DNA of 63,649 nt, filler included, from Ministeria vibrans ATCC 50519 (lineage: Eukaryota; Protista; Filasterea), in the NCBI GenBank assembly GCA_943704425.1. It is 8 parts of 8 records of this genome, joined end to end, with 100 filler letters (N's around TTAATTAATTAA, not from the genome) between each part and the next. Parts side by side here need not be neighbours in the genome. Positions count along the whole stretch, not along the records: positions 1 to 8,257 come from CALSCP010000915.1; 7 more parts are not named here. One strand, given 5' to 3'. The position numbers were made by a program, and so were the translations under genes. Shown piece by piece: positions 1 through 8,257 of the stretch. The number at the start of each line of letters is the position of its first letter. The first letter of the stretch is position 1. Below the pieces are notes generated by a model that was not told where the DNA came from, searched no databases, and saw only the letters and a list, made by a program, of their open reading frames with translations.

Positions 1-1123
1 TCATCCTCATCCTCATCCTCATCCTCATCCTCATCAACCACAGTGCTCGTGTAAGTGTCCTGAACAGCAGCGCCAGCACCTCGCATTCCTGGCGGCTTGT
101 CAGAGTTACCGTTTTCGGCGACCGCGACACGAATGAGCCGTTGCGTCAGCAGGTCCAGGTTGCTCGCTTGAGGAAACTCCTTCGCTTTATACCGAGGATC
201 CAGCAGCATGGCAGTGACAAAGAGGTTGTCCTTGAACACCTTGTTCAATGTGTTGTGGCCAGCGTAGTCCTCGTGAGTGCTGAACGAGCCGAAGTAATAG
301 GCGAGCTCGCCAATCACAAGTTTGGCGCAGAGGTCGGCGGCAATGAGCGCGGCGCGATTGGGGGTTGTGGTGGGATTGAAGGTACGTGGCAGTAAATGCT
401 TGCGCACGCCAGTATCAAGCTGAACGAGTGTTGGCAGCAACTGTGACGCCGCCGCATAGCTGGACCCTCTTTCATTGACGGCGTCGAATAAGTGGTCGAT
501 GGGTGCAGTTTGCTGACGAAGCGGTCGAAGAAGCCGCTCTCGATCAGCGCCAGCGGCAGTTTTTCGGCGATGACCAAGTCGATGAGGGAATCATCCACAC
601 TGGTAGCCTCTGTTGGCTTGAACGCGCTTAACTTTAGTTGCAGGCTGGACACGTCAGATCCACGCTTCTGAAGCTAGTCCGGCGGCGTGAGCATCCCACA
701 GACACTTGTAAAGCCGTGGACTTCTTTCAGATGCTTCGAGAAATTACTTTCGGTGGTCTCCTGACGAGCAACACGGCCGACGCGCCCCGTCTGGTTGCGG
801 CAGGGGAGTAGGCGACAACGGTAGAGCTCGTTGCCGGATTTGTTCATAGTGTTCAGGGACACGAACCAGGCGAGAGCATCACTTGTATTACGATTCATTG
901 AAAAAAAAGGTCAAAAAAAAGGTGACACTGTGATCAAATAAATGGCACCAATCGGCAGCTAAGCCGAAGATCGATCGAGATCCGCTGTTACTACAACGAT
1001 AGGATCACTGTGGAGAGCTCCGAACCTTGTCGAATCTTGGCGAACCTTGAGCGGCGCTCGAATATTCGAGGTTCGGAAGATTCGAAGATTCGAAGATTCG
1101 AAGATTCGATTTACCAGGGCCTA
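1..1123 (-). mobile_element. Degenerate, internally deleted hAT-family DNA transposon (left end plus transposase remnants)
   Basis: Minus strand shows a BED zinc finger (AWFV...YRCRLLPC...SNFSKHLKEVHG, 898-720) and an in-frame TAG at 674-676. It continues with a Hermes-type DNA-binding motif (LIDLVIAEKLPLALIESGFFDRFVSKLHP) and the hAT motif TAMLLDPRYK near 215-186. The DDE core between these is missing. A terminus-like TAGGCCCTGGTAAATCGAAT starts at 1123, followed by subterminal (TTCGAAGA)n repeats at about 1072-1108. Confidence 0.75.
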
Positions 1124-1159
1124 AACACCAATCTTTCTCTGTTTCTTTGTCACAAAACC

Positions 1160-4100
1160 ATGTCTTCGCTACAGAAACGCATTCAAGAGGCTCGGATGTC
1201 CCAGTCCTTGAACCTGAGGGAGATGGGGCTCAGTTCTCTCCCGGACGAAATTCTTGTTCTTGCTGACTCTCTACAGGAATTGCTGTTGACATACAACCCG
1301 CTTGGCGTGCTCCCCGACTGGATTGGCCAGTTCAAGAAGCTCAAGGTATGGAAAAGGGGAGAGAAGGGTGAGGGCTTCTCACGGGTCGGCGCTTTTTTTT
1401 TTCGTTCTGGACGAAGCTTCTGGACGTCGGGAAATGCAAGCTCAAGACGCTCCCGGCAGCCATTTTAGAGTTGCGTGAGCACCTGGAGGAGATAACTTAC
1501 TGGGGAAATGAGGGATTCGCGCCATCTCTCGACAATCTCTGTGCAAGTAAGAGGAGATTTTTGGTTGACGAGTGGTAAAACGAAAGATTTGTCTGTAGAA
1601 GGTTTGAGATACCTGGATCCAGTGTATTGATTAATTCTAACTCCTTATCTTGCGCTTCTGGGCGTGGCAATGTTGGGCTGCTCAGTCTGTAAGAAGGCCT
1701 CTTTTTGTATGATTTTCCTAACACTCGCAACTTTTGCAGTCTGTAAGATGTCAAGAATTCAGTGTATTATCTGACACAATTTTTGCTCGATTCGCTGCTC
1801 TGTGCTATTTGGTTTAGGGGGTAAGTTTGAAGAATAGATCGAAATGGATGGTGACTGATTTGGACTGTGATTTGGACTGTTCTTTGCATTGTTTTAGCTG
1901 GTAAGTTTGAAGAATAGATCGAAATGGATGGTTGATTTGGACTGTGATTTGGACTGTTCTTTGCATTGTTTTAGATTGTAAGTTTGAAGAATAGATCGAA
2001 ATGGATGGTGACTGATTTGGACTGTGATTTGGACTGTTCTTTGCACTGTTTTAGATCGTAAGTTTGAAGAATAGATGGAAATGGATGGTGACTGACTTGG
2101 ACTGTGATTTGGACTGTTCTTTGCATTGTTTTAGCTCGTAAGTTTGAAGAATAGATGGAAATGGATGGTGACTGATTTGGACTGTGATTTGGACTGTTCT
2201 TTGCATTGTTTTAGATCGTAAGTTTGAAGAATGGATCGAAATGGATGGTGACTGATTTGGACTGTGATTCGGACTGTTCTTTGCATTGTTTTAGTTGGTA
2301 AGTTTGAAGAATAGATGGAAATGGATGGTGACTGATTTGGACTGTGATTTGGACTGTTCTTTGCATTGTTTTAGGGTGTAAGTTTGAAGAATAGATCGAA
2401 ATGGATGGTGACTGATTTGGACTGTTCTTTGCATTGTTTTAGCTCGTAAGTTTGAAGAATAGATGGAAATGGATGGTGACTGATTTGGACTGTGATTTGG
2501 ACTGTTCTTTGCATTGTTTTAGATCGTAAGTTTGAAGAATGGATCGAAATGGATGGTGACTGATTTGGACTGTGATTTGGACTGTTCTTTGCATTGTTTT
2601 AGTTGGTAAGTTTGAAGAATAGATGGAAATGGATGGTGACTGATTTGGTCTGTGGTTTGGACTGTTCTTTGCATTGTTTTAGTGTGTAAGTTTGAAGAAT
2701 AGATCGAAATGGATGGTGACTGATTTGGACTGTGGTTTGGACTGTTCTTTGCATTGTTTTAGGGTGTAAGTTTGAAGAATAGATGGAAATGGATGTAACT
2801 GATTTGGACTGTGATTTGCGCTCTTCTTTGCATTGTTTTAGCTCGTAAGTTTGAATAATAGATCGAAATGGATGGTGACTGATTTGGACTGTGATTTGGA
2901 CTGTTCTTTGCATTGTTTTAGATTGTAAGTTTGAAGAATAGATGGAAATGGATGGTGACTGATTTGGATTGTGATTTGGACTGTTCTTTGCATTGTTTTA
3001 GGGTGTAAGTTTGAAGAATAGATGGAAATGGATGGTGACTGATTTGGACTGTGATTTGGACTGTTCTTTGCATTGTTTTAGACGGTAAGTTTGAAGAATA
3101 GATGGAAATGGATGGTGACTGATTTGGACTGTGATTTGGACTGTTCTTTGCATTGTTTTAGCTCGTAAGTTTGAAGAATAGATCGAAATGGATGGTGACT
3201 GACTTGGACTGTGATTTGGACTGTTCTTTGCATTGTTTTAGCTCGTAAGTTTGAAGAATAGATGGAAATGGATGGTGACTGACTTGGACTGTGATTTGGA
3301 CTGTTCTTTGCATTGTTTTAGCTGGTAAGTTTGAAGAATAGATGGAAATGGATGGTGACTGACTTGGACTGTGATTTGGACTGTTCTTTGCATTGTTTTA
3401 GCGCGTAAGTTTGAAGAATAGATGGAAATGGATGGTGACTGACTTGGACTGTGATTTGGACTGTTCTTTGCATTGTTTTAGGGTGTAAGTTTGAAGAATA
3501 GATGGAAATGGATGGTGACTGATTTGGACTGTTCTTTGCATTGTTTTAGATTGTAAGTTTGAAGAATAGATCGAAATGGATGGTGACTGATTTGGACTGT
3601 GATTTGGACTCTTCTTTGCATTGTTTTAGACCGTAAGTTTAAAAAATAGATCGAAATGGATGGTGACTGACTTGGACTGTGATTTGGACTGTTCTTTGCA
3701 TTGATTTAGCTGGTAAGTTTGAAGAATAGATGGAAATGGATGGTGACTGACTTGGACTGTGATTTGGACTGTTCTTTGCATTGTTTTAGAGGGTAAGTTT
3801 GAAGAATAGATCGAAATGGATGGTGACTGACTTGGACTGTGATTTGCGCTCTTCTTTGCATTGTTTTAGGGTGTAAGTTTGAAGAATAGATGGAAATGGA
3901 TGGTGACTGACTTGGACTGTGATTTGGACTGTTCTTTGCATTGTTTTAGCTCGTAAGTTTGAAGAATAGATGGAAATGGATGGTGACTGATTTGGACTGT
4001 GATTTGGACTGTTCTTTGCATTGATTTAGCTGGTAAGTTTGAAGAATAGATCGAAATGGATGGTGACTGACTTGGACTGTGGTTTGGACTGTTCTTTGCA

Positions 4101-7100
4101 TTGTTTTAGCTCGTAAGTTTGAAGAATAGATCGAAATGGATGGTGACTGACTTGGACTGTGATTTGGACTGTTCTTTGCATTGATTTAGCTGGTAAGTTT
4201 GAAGAATAGATGGAAATGGATGGTGACTGACTTGGACTGTGATTTGGACTGTTCTTTGCATTGTTTTAGAGGGTAAGTTTGAAGAATAGATCGAAATGGA
4301 TTGTGACTGATTTGGACTGTGATTTGGACTGTTCTTTGCATTGTTTTAGCTGGTAAGTTTGAAGAATAGATCGAAATGGATGGTGACTGACTTGGACTGT
4401 GATTTGCGCTCTTCTTTGCATTGTTTTAGGGTGTAAGTTTGAAGAATAGATCGAAATGGATGGTGACTGATTTGGACTGTGATTTGGACTGTTCTTTGCA
4501 TTGATTTAGCTGGTAAGTTTGAAGAATAGATCGAAATGGATGGTGACTGATTTGGACTGTGATTTGGACTGTTCTTTGCATTGTTTTAGCTGGTAAGTTT
4601 GAAGAATAGATCGAAATGGATGGTGACTGACTTGGACTGTGATTTGCGCTCTTCTTTGCATTGTTTTAGCTCGTAAGTTTGAAGAATAGATCGAAATGGA
4701 TGGTGACTGACTTGGACTGTGATTTGGACTGTTCTTTGCTTTGTTTTAGCTCGTAAGTTTGAAGAATAGATGGAAATGGATGGTGACTGATTTGGACTGT
4801 GATTTGGACTCTTCTTTGCATTGTTTTAGGGGGTAACTAAATGAGAATATTGAGAAATTGTTCGTGACTGATTTTATTTTTAGTTGGTAAGTGCGTTTTT
4901 ACATCAAGCTTGTGACTCCCCTGTACCTCGCAGACCATGCGCGATGGAAGCAGGACACACAGGCGTTCTTTCAGCTTCTCGCGGAAGGAGCTCAAAAGGA
5001 GCAACAGCGATTGGAGCAACAGCGACTGGAGCAACAGCGACTTGAGCAACAGCGACTTGAGCAACAGCGACTGGAGGAAAGAGTGCTTCGTCTCGTTGAG
5101 GTACCACATCAATCCATTGACTCTTCCAAATATCATCTGTTCTAGGAGAACGAAGCCGCGCTGAGTCGGCGACTTCAATTAGAGACGGTAAGTTTTACTT
5201 TTCATTTTCAGCGCGCCCCTTATTGTATCATTTTCAGGAATTGAACGACGCTCAAAAGCTTCTCGAGGTACCTCATCATAGAATCCCTGCCATATTGTGT
5301 TTAAAAATCACATTCAACTTGCACAGTCGGAGCGCCAGGCCAACAATACTCACGCAAAGCTACTGGAGAACGAGCCACCGCTGGTGACGCTCAGTCGCGC
5401 AGCCCATCGACTCGATCAGCTCGTTATGTCCGCCACGGCCGACAGCCTCGTCAGTGCCGATGTTGCGTCGCATCTGGCCGTCCTCCGTTCCCTCTCGCTT
5501 GATCCTCCCACACTGCAACTCCTTGAGCGAGGTCTCGACGAGCCCGATTCGCTCCTTAAAATCTGCGGCGCTGCCGAGGCGGCCCTTCGCACAGCCCAGA
5601 CGGCCTTTGAGGACGCTCCCGCCACTGCCATTGTCAGTGAATCGGACATTGACGAGCGCGACCGTCTTCGAGAGGCATTCATCACCGCTATGGATCGCTT
5701 TCTTGGCGCGCTCGCGTCCACCGACCTGGAGTATCTCCTCTCTGTTGTGCACAACGTCACTGCTACTCTCCCAGCAGCCGCCACAGCCGATACTTCACAC
5801 AATGCTACTCTCACAGCAGCCGCCACAACCGATACTTCACACAATGCTACTCTCCCAGCAGCCGCCACAGCCGATACTTCACACAATGCTACTCTCCCAG
5901 CAGCCGCCACAACCGATATTGCTACTCTCCCAGCAGCCGTCACAGGCGATGACGGCACCACTTCACACAACGTTTCCCTGTCTGCGATGGTGCACACTGC
6001 TGTCACTGCCGTCTCACAGTGGTCCACCGCTATTGACAAGCGCAACAATGACATCACGACTGCCTGTGGCAAGGTGGGCCGCCTCATCAGCGACTTTGGC
6101 AGTCTAGTAGCACAGCGCAAGAGTACCGCCGCCAACGATCAGCATCATTGTGCCGCCTCCCTCGAGCTGCACTCCGCCATCGACGCCATGCGAGACACCA
6201 CATGGCGCTTCCAGATGCAGAATGAGTTTCCTTCTGCCGCCGTTCAGGACGCGGTGCACACTGTTCGAGGTGTTGCTGCCACACTTTGCGCGCGCATTGC
6301 CGAGATCTTCGACGCTCAGGAACGCTACGAGCTGCTTCTCAAGGAGGTGAAGAGAGCACAGGCGCAAGGACCGCCCGAGACGACGACGATCGACGCTTTG
6401 AATGCGACAGTCAAGAAGCTGCGTCGTCGTATGGGGCACGCGAAGGTCGACCTCGAGAGCGAAGACGATCCGGCCGAGCAGGAGATCCTGATCCAAGAGC
6501 TCGCCGAGTTCAAGAAGGAGCTGCAGTCGACGTTGGGCTCGCTCCGTCGCGAGATCTCCCGTGTGGTTATTCTTGCCCAGGGACACTTTCCTGAAGTGTT
6601 GCGCCGAAGCACCGAGCTCGCGCAGTTTGGTAGCGCCATGGTGGGCGGCGAGCTCTTTGCAGAGCGACCGCTCGACGAGTACTTTCAGGAAAGAATTCTG
6701 GCGCGCAAGCCACACATGGTGCGACTCATGTCTTTTGATGGGGAGCTCTGTGTGCTCAAGGAGTTCTCGGTGCACGCTCTGAAGACATTTGTCTCGGAGG
6801 CCAATCGCTTGCGCCGCCTGTGCCACCCTCATGTTGTGTCTGTGGGTGTGTGCTTTGCTCACAAGGATCACGTCTACATGGAGATGCCATTTTATGCGGG
6901 CGGATCACTTCCAACCTGGCTGGAGCGGCTCTCTGGCGGTGGCGTCGAGGTCCCTTCTGCATGCCGTCGCTGGATCATGCGCGAGACTCTGACGGCGATT
7001 GAGGCAAGAAAAATGCCGACGAGAACAATGTGAAATCTGACTATTTGCATGCTTTAGTATGTGCACTCGCAAGGAATCATTCACTGTGACGTGAAGCCTG

Positions 7101-8232
7101 AGAACGTGCTGATGACAAGCGAGTCGGAGCAGGCGCGGGCTGTATTGGCCGACTTTGATGTGAGTCTGGACGTGAGTGGGCGCACAATGACGATGATGAT
7201 GACCGTTGCTGCACCCGCGTCTGGACCGCGAGGCACGATGCAGTTTATGGCGCCCGAGCTCCTCAGCGGCACGCAAGAGCCTACGCCTGCCGTCGACATG
7301 TACTCGTTCGGCGTGACGCTTCTGTGGACCATGACGGGGAAGACGCTTTCAGTGCAGCGAACACTTCCTGTGCTCGCCGACAATGTGTCGCTGATGAGCG
7401 TGCTTCAGACGCTGGTGACCGACGACGCTGCCGGGCGTCCGACTGCTGCTCTCACACTGGCCGCCGACTTCTTCTCGGCGGACGTTTCGCAAGAGACGAT
7501 TGCCCTTGAGCAGCAACAGAGTGAGGCGGCAGTGGCGGCAGAACAAGTTGCTGCGGAGATTCGCGAGCGCCAACAAGTGCTACGCCAAGAGCAGGAGCGT
7601 GTGCAGCGCGCGGCAGAGGAGCAGGCAGCACGCGAGGCTGAGCTTGTGCTCGAACGCGAATCAAGCAAGGCGGAGGACGACGTGGCGCGACGCACATTGC
7701 AGGCACACGAGGCGCAGGTCAAGGAATCGGCTGCGAGGCTGCGCAAAGAGATGCAAGAGGTGCGCAAGGACCGTGAAGCCGTCGAGAAGCTGCAAAAGTC
7801 CGTCAAGGTATGATGGATACTCCACGTCTTTTCTTGTCTCATCTTGTTCTGTAGCATCTGGTGACGCCCCCACTGCACTGGACACTGACAACGCTCGAGC
7901 AACCCATGATGAAGGAGATGGCCGTGAGCAGGGAAGTTCAGGCGGGACTGGAGCGGTTGCTGAACGAAACGGCGGAGGCGGACACACACGGGGTTGGCAG
8001 AGACAGTCATTCTGTTCGCTTTCGGCGTTTCAAGGTGACTCGAGCTACCCGCATCGAGAACCCGCTTCTGTGGCGAACGTACGCTTTGGAGCGACAACGA
8101 GTGGCAGACCAGTGGAAAGGCAAGGGGCAGCTGCAGGTGACGCCAGCTGTACGTACGGACTCGGTGATGTGGGACGGACGTCAGCGACTGATGCAGGAGG
8201 CGGGCGAGCATTACCTCTTCCACGGAACGAGC
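1160..8232 (+). CDS. LRR - microexon-encoded variable segment - coiled coil - non-RD Ser/Thr kinase - PARP catalytic domain protein (3' end cut by contig end)
   Basis: Predicted exons: 1160-1345 and 1417-1546 (LRRs: LNLREMGLSSLPDEI, LLLTYNPLGVLPDWI, LDVGKCKLKTLPAAI); 43 three-nt exons between 1599 and 4886; 4934-5100 (EQQRL repeats); 5146-5187; 5238-5267; 5327-7003 (helical region, CVLKEF, CHPHVV); 7058-7807 (HCDVKPEN, DFD, GTMQFMAPE); 7855-8232 (RIENPLLW, EHYLFHGT). With these splice sites the frame is continuous from the ATG to the contig end. Confidence 0.85.
1818..4832 (+). repeat. Tandem array of about 80-bp units: 38 near-identical 77-nt introns separating 39 variable 3-nt microexons
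   Basis: Unit is NNN|GTAAGTTTGAAGAATAGAT(C/G)GAAATGGATGGTGACTGA(T/C)TTGGACTGTGATTTGGACTGTTCTTTGCATTGTTTTAG. It has a perfect donor, a CTGAY branch site, a pyrimidine-rich tract and an AG acceptor. The triplet between AG and GT takes 12 different values. Confidence 0.9.
4998..5075 (+). repeat. Coding 15-bp tandem repeat (EQQRL x5), coiled coil
   Basis: GAGCAACAGCGACTG/CTT-type unit repeated in the exon directly after the microexon array. Confidence 0.85.
5761..5938 (+). repeat. Coding 42-bp tandem repeat (ATLPAAATADTSHN, about 4 copies)
   Basis: TGCTACTCTCCCAGCAGCCGCCACAGCCGATACTTCACACAA repeated in frame within ORF 5297-7033. Confidence 0.85.
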
Positions 8233-8257
8233 GTAAGGCACAGAAGAAAAACGAATG

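Follow-up and report, generated by a model that had tools for sequence, protein, structure and literature searches.

We describe a run of extremely small exons in a gene of the filasterean Ministeria vibrans ATCC 50519 (assembly GCA_943704425.1), where it takes the form of an 80-bp satellite. The window, the whole stretch of DNA that was analyzed, comprises 63,649 nucleotides joined from eight contig parts, and the gene lies on the first of these (positions 1-8257, CALSCP010000915.1, C915 below). We consider it fairly probable, at roughly three chances in four, that the satellite is a coding array of 43 consecutive 3-nt exons that are flanked one by one by full-length short introns and are all spliced into the mRNA. 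The product would be a low-complexity linker of about 43 residues (enriched in aromatics, Gly, Pro and Ala) between a small N-terminal leucine-rich repeat (LRR) region and the remainder of the protein. Full-text literature searches found no earlier description of tandem arrays of 3-nt exons.

Tandem Repeats Finder (TRF) reports an 80-bp unit in 38.0 copies at 1821-4829. A first-pass annotation of this DNA had read each unit as a complete intron plus one 3-nt exon, and both TRF and the parsing of units bear this out: all units open with GTAAGT, close with TTTAG and are followed by exactly 3 nt. The core array (1818..4832, plus strand), delimited by TRF, unit parsing and RNA contigs, consists of 39 three-base exons interleaved with 38 homogenised phase-1 introns and runs from a GGG at 1818-1820 to a GGG at 4830-4832. 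Its triplets take 12 forms, and in our parse they stand in the order that the annotation had listed. Four flanking microexons, also at the positions it had given, bring the total to 43, all exactly 3 nt long. Three of them lead into the array on the plus strand, AAG (1599..1601, between an AG and a GT), TCT (1686..1688) and TCT (1740..1742), and the last, TTG (4884..4886, plus strand), follows a non-homogenised intron (4833..4883, plus strand) that opens with GTAACT. The core introns measure 77 nt in 33 cases and 65 nt in two, the remaining three being 74, 76 and 77 nt. All copies of the array intron have a branch-type motif (CTGAT or CTGAC) and finish in a T-rich stretch, and the splice sites of the units are invariant. 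Other introns of the same gene have signals of like kind and similar lengths (44-86 nt). Each 77-nt intron also contains a 12-nt direct duplication (TGATTTGGACTG twice, e.g. at 1856-1880), of which the two 65-nt introns (2378-2442 and 3485-3549) hold a single copy.

Transcript evidence comes from assembled contigs of two separate studies with different organism labels, X1 (2011) and X2 (2025), and a DNA run, X19, served as control. Ordinary GT..AG joints of the host gene (5187>5238 and 5267>5327) and loose ends at 5100>5146 are found in both X1 and X2 and not in X19, which covers all 30 bins of the stretch; X1 and X2 therefore represent spliced RNA. In both studies, contigs aligned over 4933-5027 carry 17 preceding letters which, with the aligned G, read CTG CTG CTC CTC GGG TTG. 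This string corresponds to the six most 3' microexons (4510-4512 to 4884-4886), kept in their genomic order and linked to 4934 with the intron at 4833..4883 spliced out. In another X2 contig the intron at 4433-4509 is retained, and after it come CTG, the five following microexons and the exon, with the five later introns removed, which explains why the fully spliced contig breaks at exactly that point. Three contig rows read intron-CTC-ATC-intron and intron-TTG-GGT-intron, that is, pairs of neighbouring microexons from the 5' half between which the intron has been spliced out; the ATC triplet and the TTG-GGT adjacency are exclusive to the window array among the arrays parsed. The second and third leading microexons are joined in an X2 contig (1688>1742).

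Joined runs also match related arrays elsewhere in the genome, on contigs C73 (9 triplets), C2647 (6, and a further 2 that fall in an assembly gap) and C43 (3, ATG TTG TTG, ahead of its retained last intron). In X6, from a related species about 7-9% divergent, TTG and GGG are joined, and one contig passes from the second leading microexon to the downstream exon through 55 unaligned letters, a length that would correspond to 17 triplets and 4 exon bases that mismatch. At the 5' side of the array, those of the listed contigs from X1 and X2 that extend to the end of exon 2 stop aligning precisely at 1546, and their further letters form no continuous stretch of the genome. The two with an exact match to exon 2 have tails of 27 and 63 letters past 1546; both lengths are divisible by 3, which is what contig breaks at the edges of microexons would give. 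The joined string, a 27-mer, was not found in the genomic DNA at up to 2 mismatches, so a retrocopy is not its source, and no contig has a direct 1546>4934 joint. The search of RNA for joined triplets that the annotation had proposed thus returned ordered runs, and these support the conclusion that the triplets, instead of being excised with the array as a single intron, are spliced into transcripts in genomic order.

Contigs spliced in patches are abundant (in X2 the partly spliced form has a depth of 74.6, versus 248.5 for the fully spliced 3' end). They fit stepwise removal of introns in an order that is not strictly 5' to 3'. They could also be taken as a sign of regulated skipping of single 3-nt exons, by which one cell or clone would diversify the protein combinatorially, and any subset of such symmetric units would stay in frame. 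A further contig that might point this way, from X1, joins 2841 to 4933 at a depth of 8.5 with 9 exon mismatches; the 20 letters between the intron end and the exon have no whole-triplet parse, match no assembled array and are unexplained. However, all joined runs that can be interpreted are consecutive and in genomic order (weak evidence, as contigs drop rare variants), and the mixed contigs retain whole introns, which fits splicing intermediates better than skipped exons. We regard combinatorial skipping as unlikely.

Exon 2 ends in phase 1 at 1546, with one A carried over, and the exon after the array starts in phase 1 at 4934, where two bases complete the codon. The first-pass annotation had stated these phases and a frame open beyond them, and exon-by-exon checking confirmed both, to position 8232. 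In this frame, which we call the offset frame, each codon consists of the last base of one triplet and the first two bases of the next. The exon phases either side of the array agree with it in the window and in all paralogs. Based on 211 triplets, it contains 1 stop versus 4.5 expected under shuffled triplet order (P 0.029), and this lone stop lies in the 5'-truncated array on C312; the unused frame contains 13 versus 12.6 expected. The leading microexons read in the offset frame as a conserved K/R-V-F/Y-W. Of the six paralogs read, five have AAG as the first and one has GAG (K or R), the second is TCT or TTT (synonymous, Val, in this frame only), the third is TCT, TTT, ATT or ACT (F or Y), and the GGN that follows always yields Trp. 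The differences between paralogs are synonymous or conservative here and would be radical changes if the triplets were read in their own frame. TTG, which closes all complete paralog arrays, gives Val and then Asp over the junction with the downstream exon.

Taken together, exon phases, stop depletion and the synonymous pattern support the offset frame as the predicted frame of translation. Reading the triplets in their own frame, which would give a hydrophobic peptide rich in Gly, Leu and Ile, was rejected because the exon phases and the synonymous patterns fit the other frame. The predicted peptide of the window array is rich in W, Y, H, A, P, G and S and that of the C73 array in G, R, W and F; the encoded segments are of low complexity and particular to each array.

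The near-uniformity of the introns beside diverse triplets, already noted in the first pass, is large in quantitative terms. Based on 33 units of 80 bp, pairs of units differ by 0.034 per site within the intron (77 positions) and by 0.625 within the exon (3 positions), an 18-fold contrast. Unit pairs of the window array whose introns are at most 1 base apart nonetheless have different triplets in 100 of 120 cases (83%), with a mean difference of 1.8 bases. Across eight analysable arrays, intron diversity is 0.008-0.039 and triplet diversity 0.54-0.71 (a 15- to 89-fold contrast), and 68-92% of such closely matched unit pairs carry different triplets. Such a pattern is not what a neutral satellite would give.

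Introns so much more uniform than exons might mean that the excised intron RNA is the useful product, released at about 40 copies per transcript as in tandem small nucleolar RNA (snoRNA) host genes, and that the exons are frame-keeping spacers. The introns fall into two families, with periods of 80 bp and 88-89 bp and consensus sequences 78-82% identical, and blocks are conserved between their 77-nt and 85-nt introns (for example the branch-site region and the 3' third), which speaks for this reading. However, the array has no Rfam match, the intron fold is not unusual (z -1.57), and the consensus structure from eight arrays reaches -1.6 kcal/mol and lacks covariation; the same three results led us to reject a box C/D or hairpin RNA within the intron. 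A spacer role also leaves unexplained both the escape of the triplets from homogenisation and their frame-specific pattern. We consider a role for the intron RNA very unlikely.

The array belongs to a family. In a scan of the genome (29.7 Mb, 2860 contigs), all 138 DNA matches to the array unit fall on 12 contigs (C915, C43, C73 with two arrays, C2647, C2596, C1260, C312, C1600, C1049, C173, C2854 and C2414) and represent at least 13 loci, and each locus examined is a tandem array of the family or a remnant of one. The genome search for chains of 3-nt exons that the annotation had called for recovered this same array family, on the 12 contigs only, plus low-complexity noise. LRR exons upstream of the arrays on C43, C2596, C1260, C2647, C73 and C1049 share 74-93% amino-acid identity with the window exons (exon 1, 77-89% to six paralogs; exon 2, 74-93%, with an identical type of ending in all). 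At six loci the order is the same: exon 2 with the same end bases and phase 1, then the three leading microexons, whose introns are their own and not homogenised, then the array and the TTG microexon. The exon that follows begins with a conserved D-R/H-A-Q/R-W-K. Complete arrays range from 13 microexons (C1049) to 45 (C43). Several paralogs have a caspase (Peptidase_C14) domain above the Pfam cut-off and a weak Roc-like stretch, and from the predicted proteins a shared N-terminal LRR-plus-array module is combined with varied effector domains.

Among four arrays on different contigs the intron consensus is 96-99% identical and the flanks about 85-92%, and intron variants are almost uncoupled from triplets. 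Both observations would suit introns that are young mobile copies, introner-like or spread by reverse splicing, inserted at all codon boundaries of an older continuous exon. However, the intron family is tandem inside one gene family and not dispersed, no terminal inverted repeats or target duplications were seen by eye, short arrays lack leftover multi-codon exons, and multi-unit higher-order repeats with matching intron variants show that units duplicate. We judge this origin highly improbable; a classical DNA-transposon origin of the intron was rejected, as the intron ends are not inverted repeats. Finally, a non-coding satellite removed as a single intron, or triplet variation that is assembly noise, is almost certainly wrong: repeats of this kind are frequently misassembled from short reads, and N gaps occur in other arrays, but after testing nothing speaks for either version, the exact triplet order is reproduced by the RNA of two studies, the DNA run covers the whole stretch and the direct joint across the array was not seen.

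We favour the coding array of spliced 3-nt exons, and its evolution may be pictured as follows. An intron plus one codon would act as an 80-bp satellite unit, of which whole copies are added or removed by unequal recombination; since splicing takes out 77 of the 80 bases, every such event would change the protein by a single in-frame residue. The first-pass suggestion of tuning one residue at a time had invoked both gain or loss of units and alternative splicing. The former agrees with the range of 13-45 microexons among paralogs, and the latter is not borne out by joins that are consecutive only. Blocks of several units also appear to duplicate together, as the window array contains multi-unit higher-order repeats that share intron variants. 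Concerted evolution, through frequent conversion and unequal exchange within and between arrays, would keep the introns near-identical while the codons escape, and for this escape there must be selection on what is translated or a local excess of mutation. Selection on the peptide may protect the codons, or a local mutation process may replenish them, and both are compatible with the present data.

Because introns are short in this gene, they are probably recognised across the intron, which would lift the usual minimum exon size. Splice sites 3 nt apart cannot be occupied simultaneously, so neighbouring introns would have to be removed one after another. Stepwise splicing with intron definition is the most likely mode. 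A bolder proposal, which we hold only tentatively and consider rather unlikely, is that the array is an evolvability device. The homogenised introns would then provide homology for recombination, so that single residues of a receptor-like linker next to the LRR are gained, lost and reshuffled in frame at satellite-like rates, with codons kept diverse by diversifying selection or targeted mutation, and stochastic or regulated skipping could add isoforms.

Several points weigh against the coding array. The RNA support is from short assembled contigs and not from reads; the middle of the array is covered by two-exon joins only, and the tails past 1546 are known by length only. Translation of the array is a prediction, and stop avoidance alone cannot choose the frame, as the triplets' own frame has 0 stops versus 3.6 expected. 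Arrays on other contigs hold assembly gaps (N), so that their unit counts are minimum values. Triplet order shows no colinearity between paralogous arrays, and the coupling of intron variants to triplets is weak, such that duplication of whole units alone does not explain everything.

The array resembles several known systems without coinciding with any of them. In the micro-exon genes (MEGs) of Schistosoma and other flatworms, exons of 6-81 nt are separated by long unrelated introns, the products are secreted and exon skipping is documented. The likeness lies in a run of very short symmetric exons (multiples of 3 nt) amid normal exons, here 43 of 3 nt between exon 2 and the exon at 4934 that are included in RNA, and in a segment that varies among gene copies. 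In contrast to MEGs, all of these exons are 3 nt long, the introns form a homogenised tandem repeat and the protein is of an intracellular LRR/kinase type; the N-terminus encoded by exon 1 is by eye polar and runs into LRR-type sequence, which argues against secretion. As for skipping, only consecutive joins were found, in contigs unable to exclude rare isoforms.

Zhuo et al., in PNAS in 2007, reportedly described introns derived from tandem arrays with splice sites in each repeat unit, mostly in non-coding or alternatively spliced primate repeats. Such arrays are similar in that the repeat is processed as several introns, but here one codon is left per unit and the frame is conserved across a gene family. 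Recursive splicing also removes stretches stepwise, and its ratchet sites leave nothing in the mRNA; the 3' splice site nearly abuts the 5' splice site in our units too, but the triplets are present in the RNA contigs. Introners are near-identical introns dispersed in unrelated genes, whereas the units described here are confined to loci of the array family. In fungal NLR proteins with WD, ANK or TPR repeats, and in HLA class I genes with their introns, a repeat or intron is kept uniform although a few codons retain high diversity. Homogenisation beside diverse codons, in receptor-like hosts with cell-death domains, is a feature in common. There, however, the unit itself is coding or is situated between alleles, whereas here the homogenised part is the intron and the variable part an entire exon.

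With respect to splicing, the model of Sterner and Berget from 1993 is said to require sequential removal of the flanking introns for a mini-exon to be included. An isolated 3-nt microexon can be included in mRNA in RPS24 (PMC12207440). Such microexons stand alone there, and 43 stand in a row here. The SNORD115/116 transcripts contain dozens of tandem near-identical introns, in non-coding hosts and with a snoRNA in each intron (PMC11608373). Many tandem near-identical introns in one transcript are common to both systems, but no structured small RNA was found in the array introns by Rfam, fold z or consensus structure.

The array pushes several limits jointly: the smallest practical exon, more than 40 of them in a row, at least 13 loci of one gene family, and RNA support. 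For splicing research it offers a natural test of the spliceosome at sites 3 nt apart and of the order in which neighbouring introns are removed. For genome evolution it is a candidate coding satellite in which a change of copy number would alter a protein by single residues, with uniform introns beside diverse codons. Standard gene finders and read aligners are unable to model such exons, and similar arrays may be hidden elsewhere as "intronic satellites". A filasterean host bears on the splicing abilities that preceded the origin of animals. Gene content and a genome size near 30 Mb also indicate a probable unicellular holozoan, of which a filasterean is one kind: the genome gave at least 28 SH2 matches and three strong integrin-beta matches, two fungal Zn-cluster matches only, no light-harvesting proteins, and no elicitin match in a scan that did not detect its controls either. 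If the evolvability proposal were true, hypervariable proteins would arise by a novel route in a unicellular organism closely related to animals.

The host gene lies on the plus strand. Exon 1 (1160..1345, 186 nt) is an open reading frame (ORF) with the start codon and the N-terminal part of the LRR, has weak LRR_1 and LRR_8 matches and ends in phase 0; its join to 1417 appears as a loose end in X2. Exon 2 (1417..1546, 130 nt) continues the LRR. After the array come the exon at 4934..5100 and those at 5146-5187, 5238-5267, 5327-7003, 7058-7807 and 7855-8232, with an open frame throughout. Of the LRR-kinase-PARP architecture assigned in the first pass, the kinase is clear (Pkinase, E 6e-20; the last part of 5327-7003 plus 7058-7807), the LRR match is weak, under the Pfam cut-off, and the PARP domain is not confirmed, with no match in Pfam, in the genome scan on C915 or in PDB. 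The contig ends at 8257, and the sole trace of a PARP region is a short HGT-type motif at this end. The C-terminal part of the protein comprises a coiled-coil region and a protein kinase, within which 7004-7057 is a probable GC-AG intron (it opens with GCAAGA), placed by the continuity of kinase motifs. Protein searches were made exon by exon. Exon 2 had a single return among 1.84 billion protein representatives, a read-through ORF of a 685-bp metagenome contig; word-index protein searches gave no match, a metagenome scan returned a bacterial false positive, and comparison with a protein atlas gave generic kinase clusters only.

Among the paralogs, caspase ends (Peptidase_C14; one also CHAT) take the place of the kinase in L037 (1899-2834), L032 (1296-2162) and L039 (7762-8628). 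As for the ROCO proteins, in which a Roc GTPase and a COR domain adjoin LRRs, Roc matches are found in paralogs only, under the cut-off (E 0.0017 to 0.12), with LRRK2 at E 0.61 in a PDB profile search; an AlphaFold model of the paralogs' central domain had a confidence score (pLDDT) of 35 and was not used. The arrays at L033 7078-7330 (C2647) and L036 5992-6060 (C1600) break at the same intron point, just past the branch-site block, with unrelated sequence beyond; either a hotspot of rearrangement or a join made in assembly could account for this. At L040 5297-5900 (C2596) the LRR exons and leading microexons are intact and are followed by one array unit, repeated non-coding sequence and a tyrosine-kinase-like fragment, which suggests that this paralog is probably rearranged or a pseudogene. 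The C312 array (L035 4100-5240, minus strand) lacks upstream LRR exons, has one unit with a GC donor and contains GAT GAT, the source of its stop; it is probably a decaying copy.

Further repeats occur in and near the host gene. The exon after the array contains an in-frame 15-nt tandem repeat (4998-5076, 5.3 copies) that encodes a Q/R/L/E coiled-coil-like stretch, and at 5761-5939 an in-frame 42-nt repeat (3.8 copies) encodes a 14-residue unit rich in Thr, Ala and Ser. About 50 nt 5' of the start codon, at 1058-1109, there is an 8-nt tandem repeat, TCGAAGAT, in 6.5 copies. Just upstream of the gene, the minus strand of 1-890 carries remains of a hAT-type transposase in three frames, with a BED-like N-terminus and an LDPRYK-type C-terminal motif, and looks like a broken copy.

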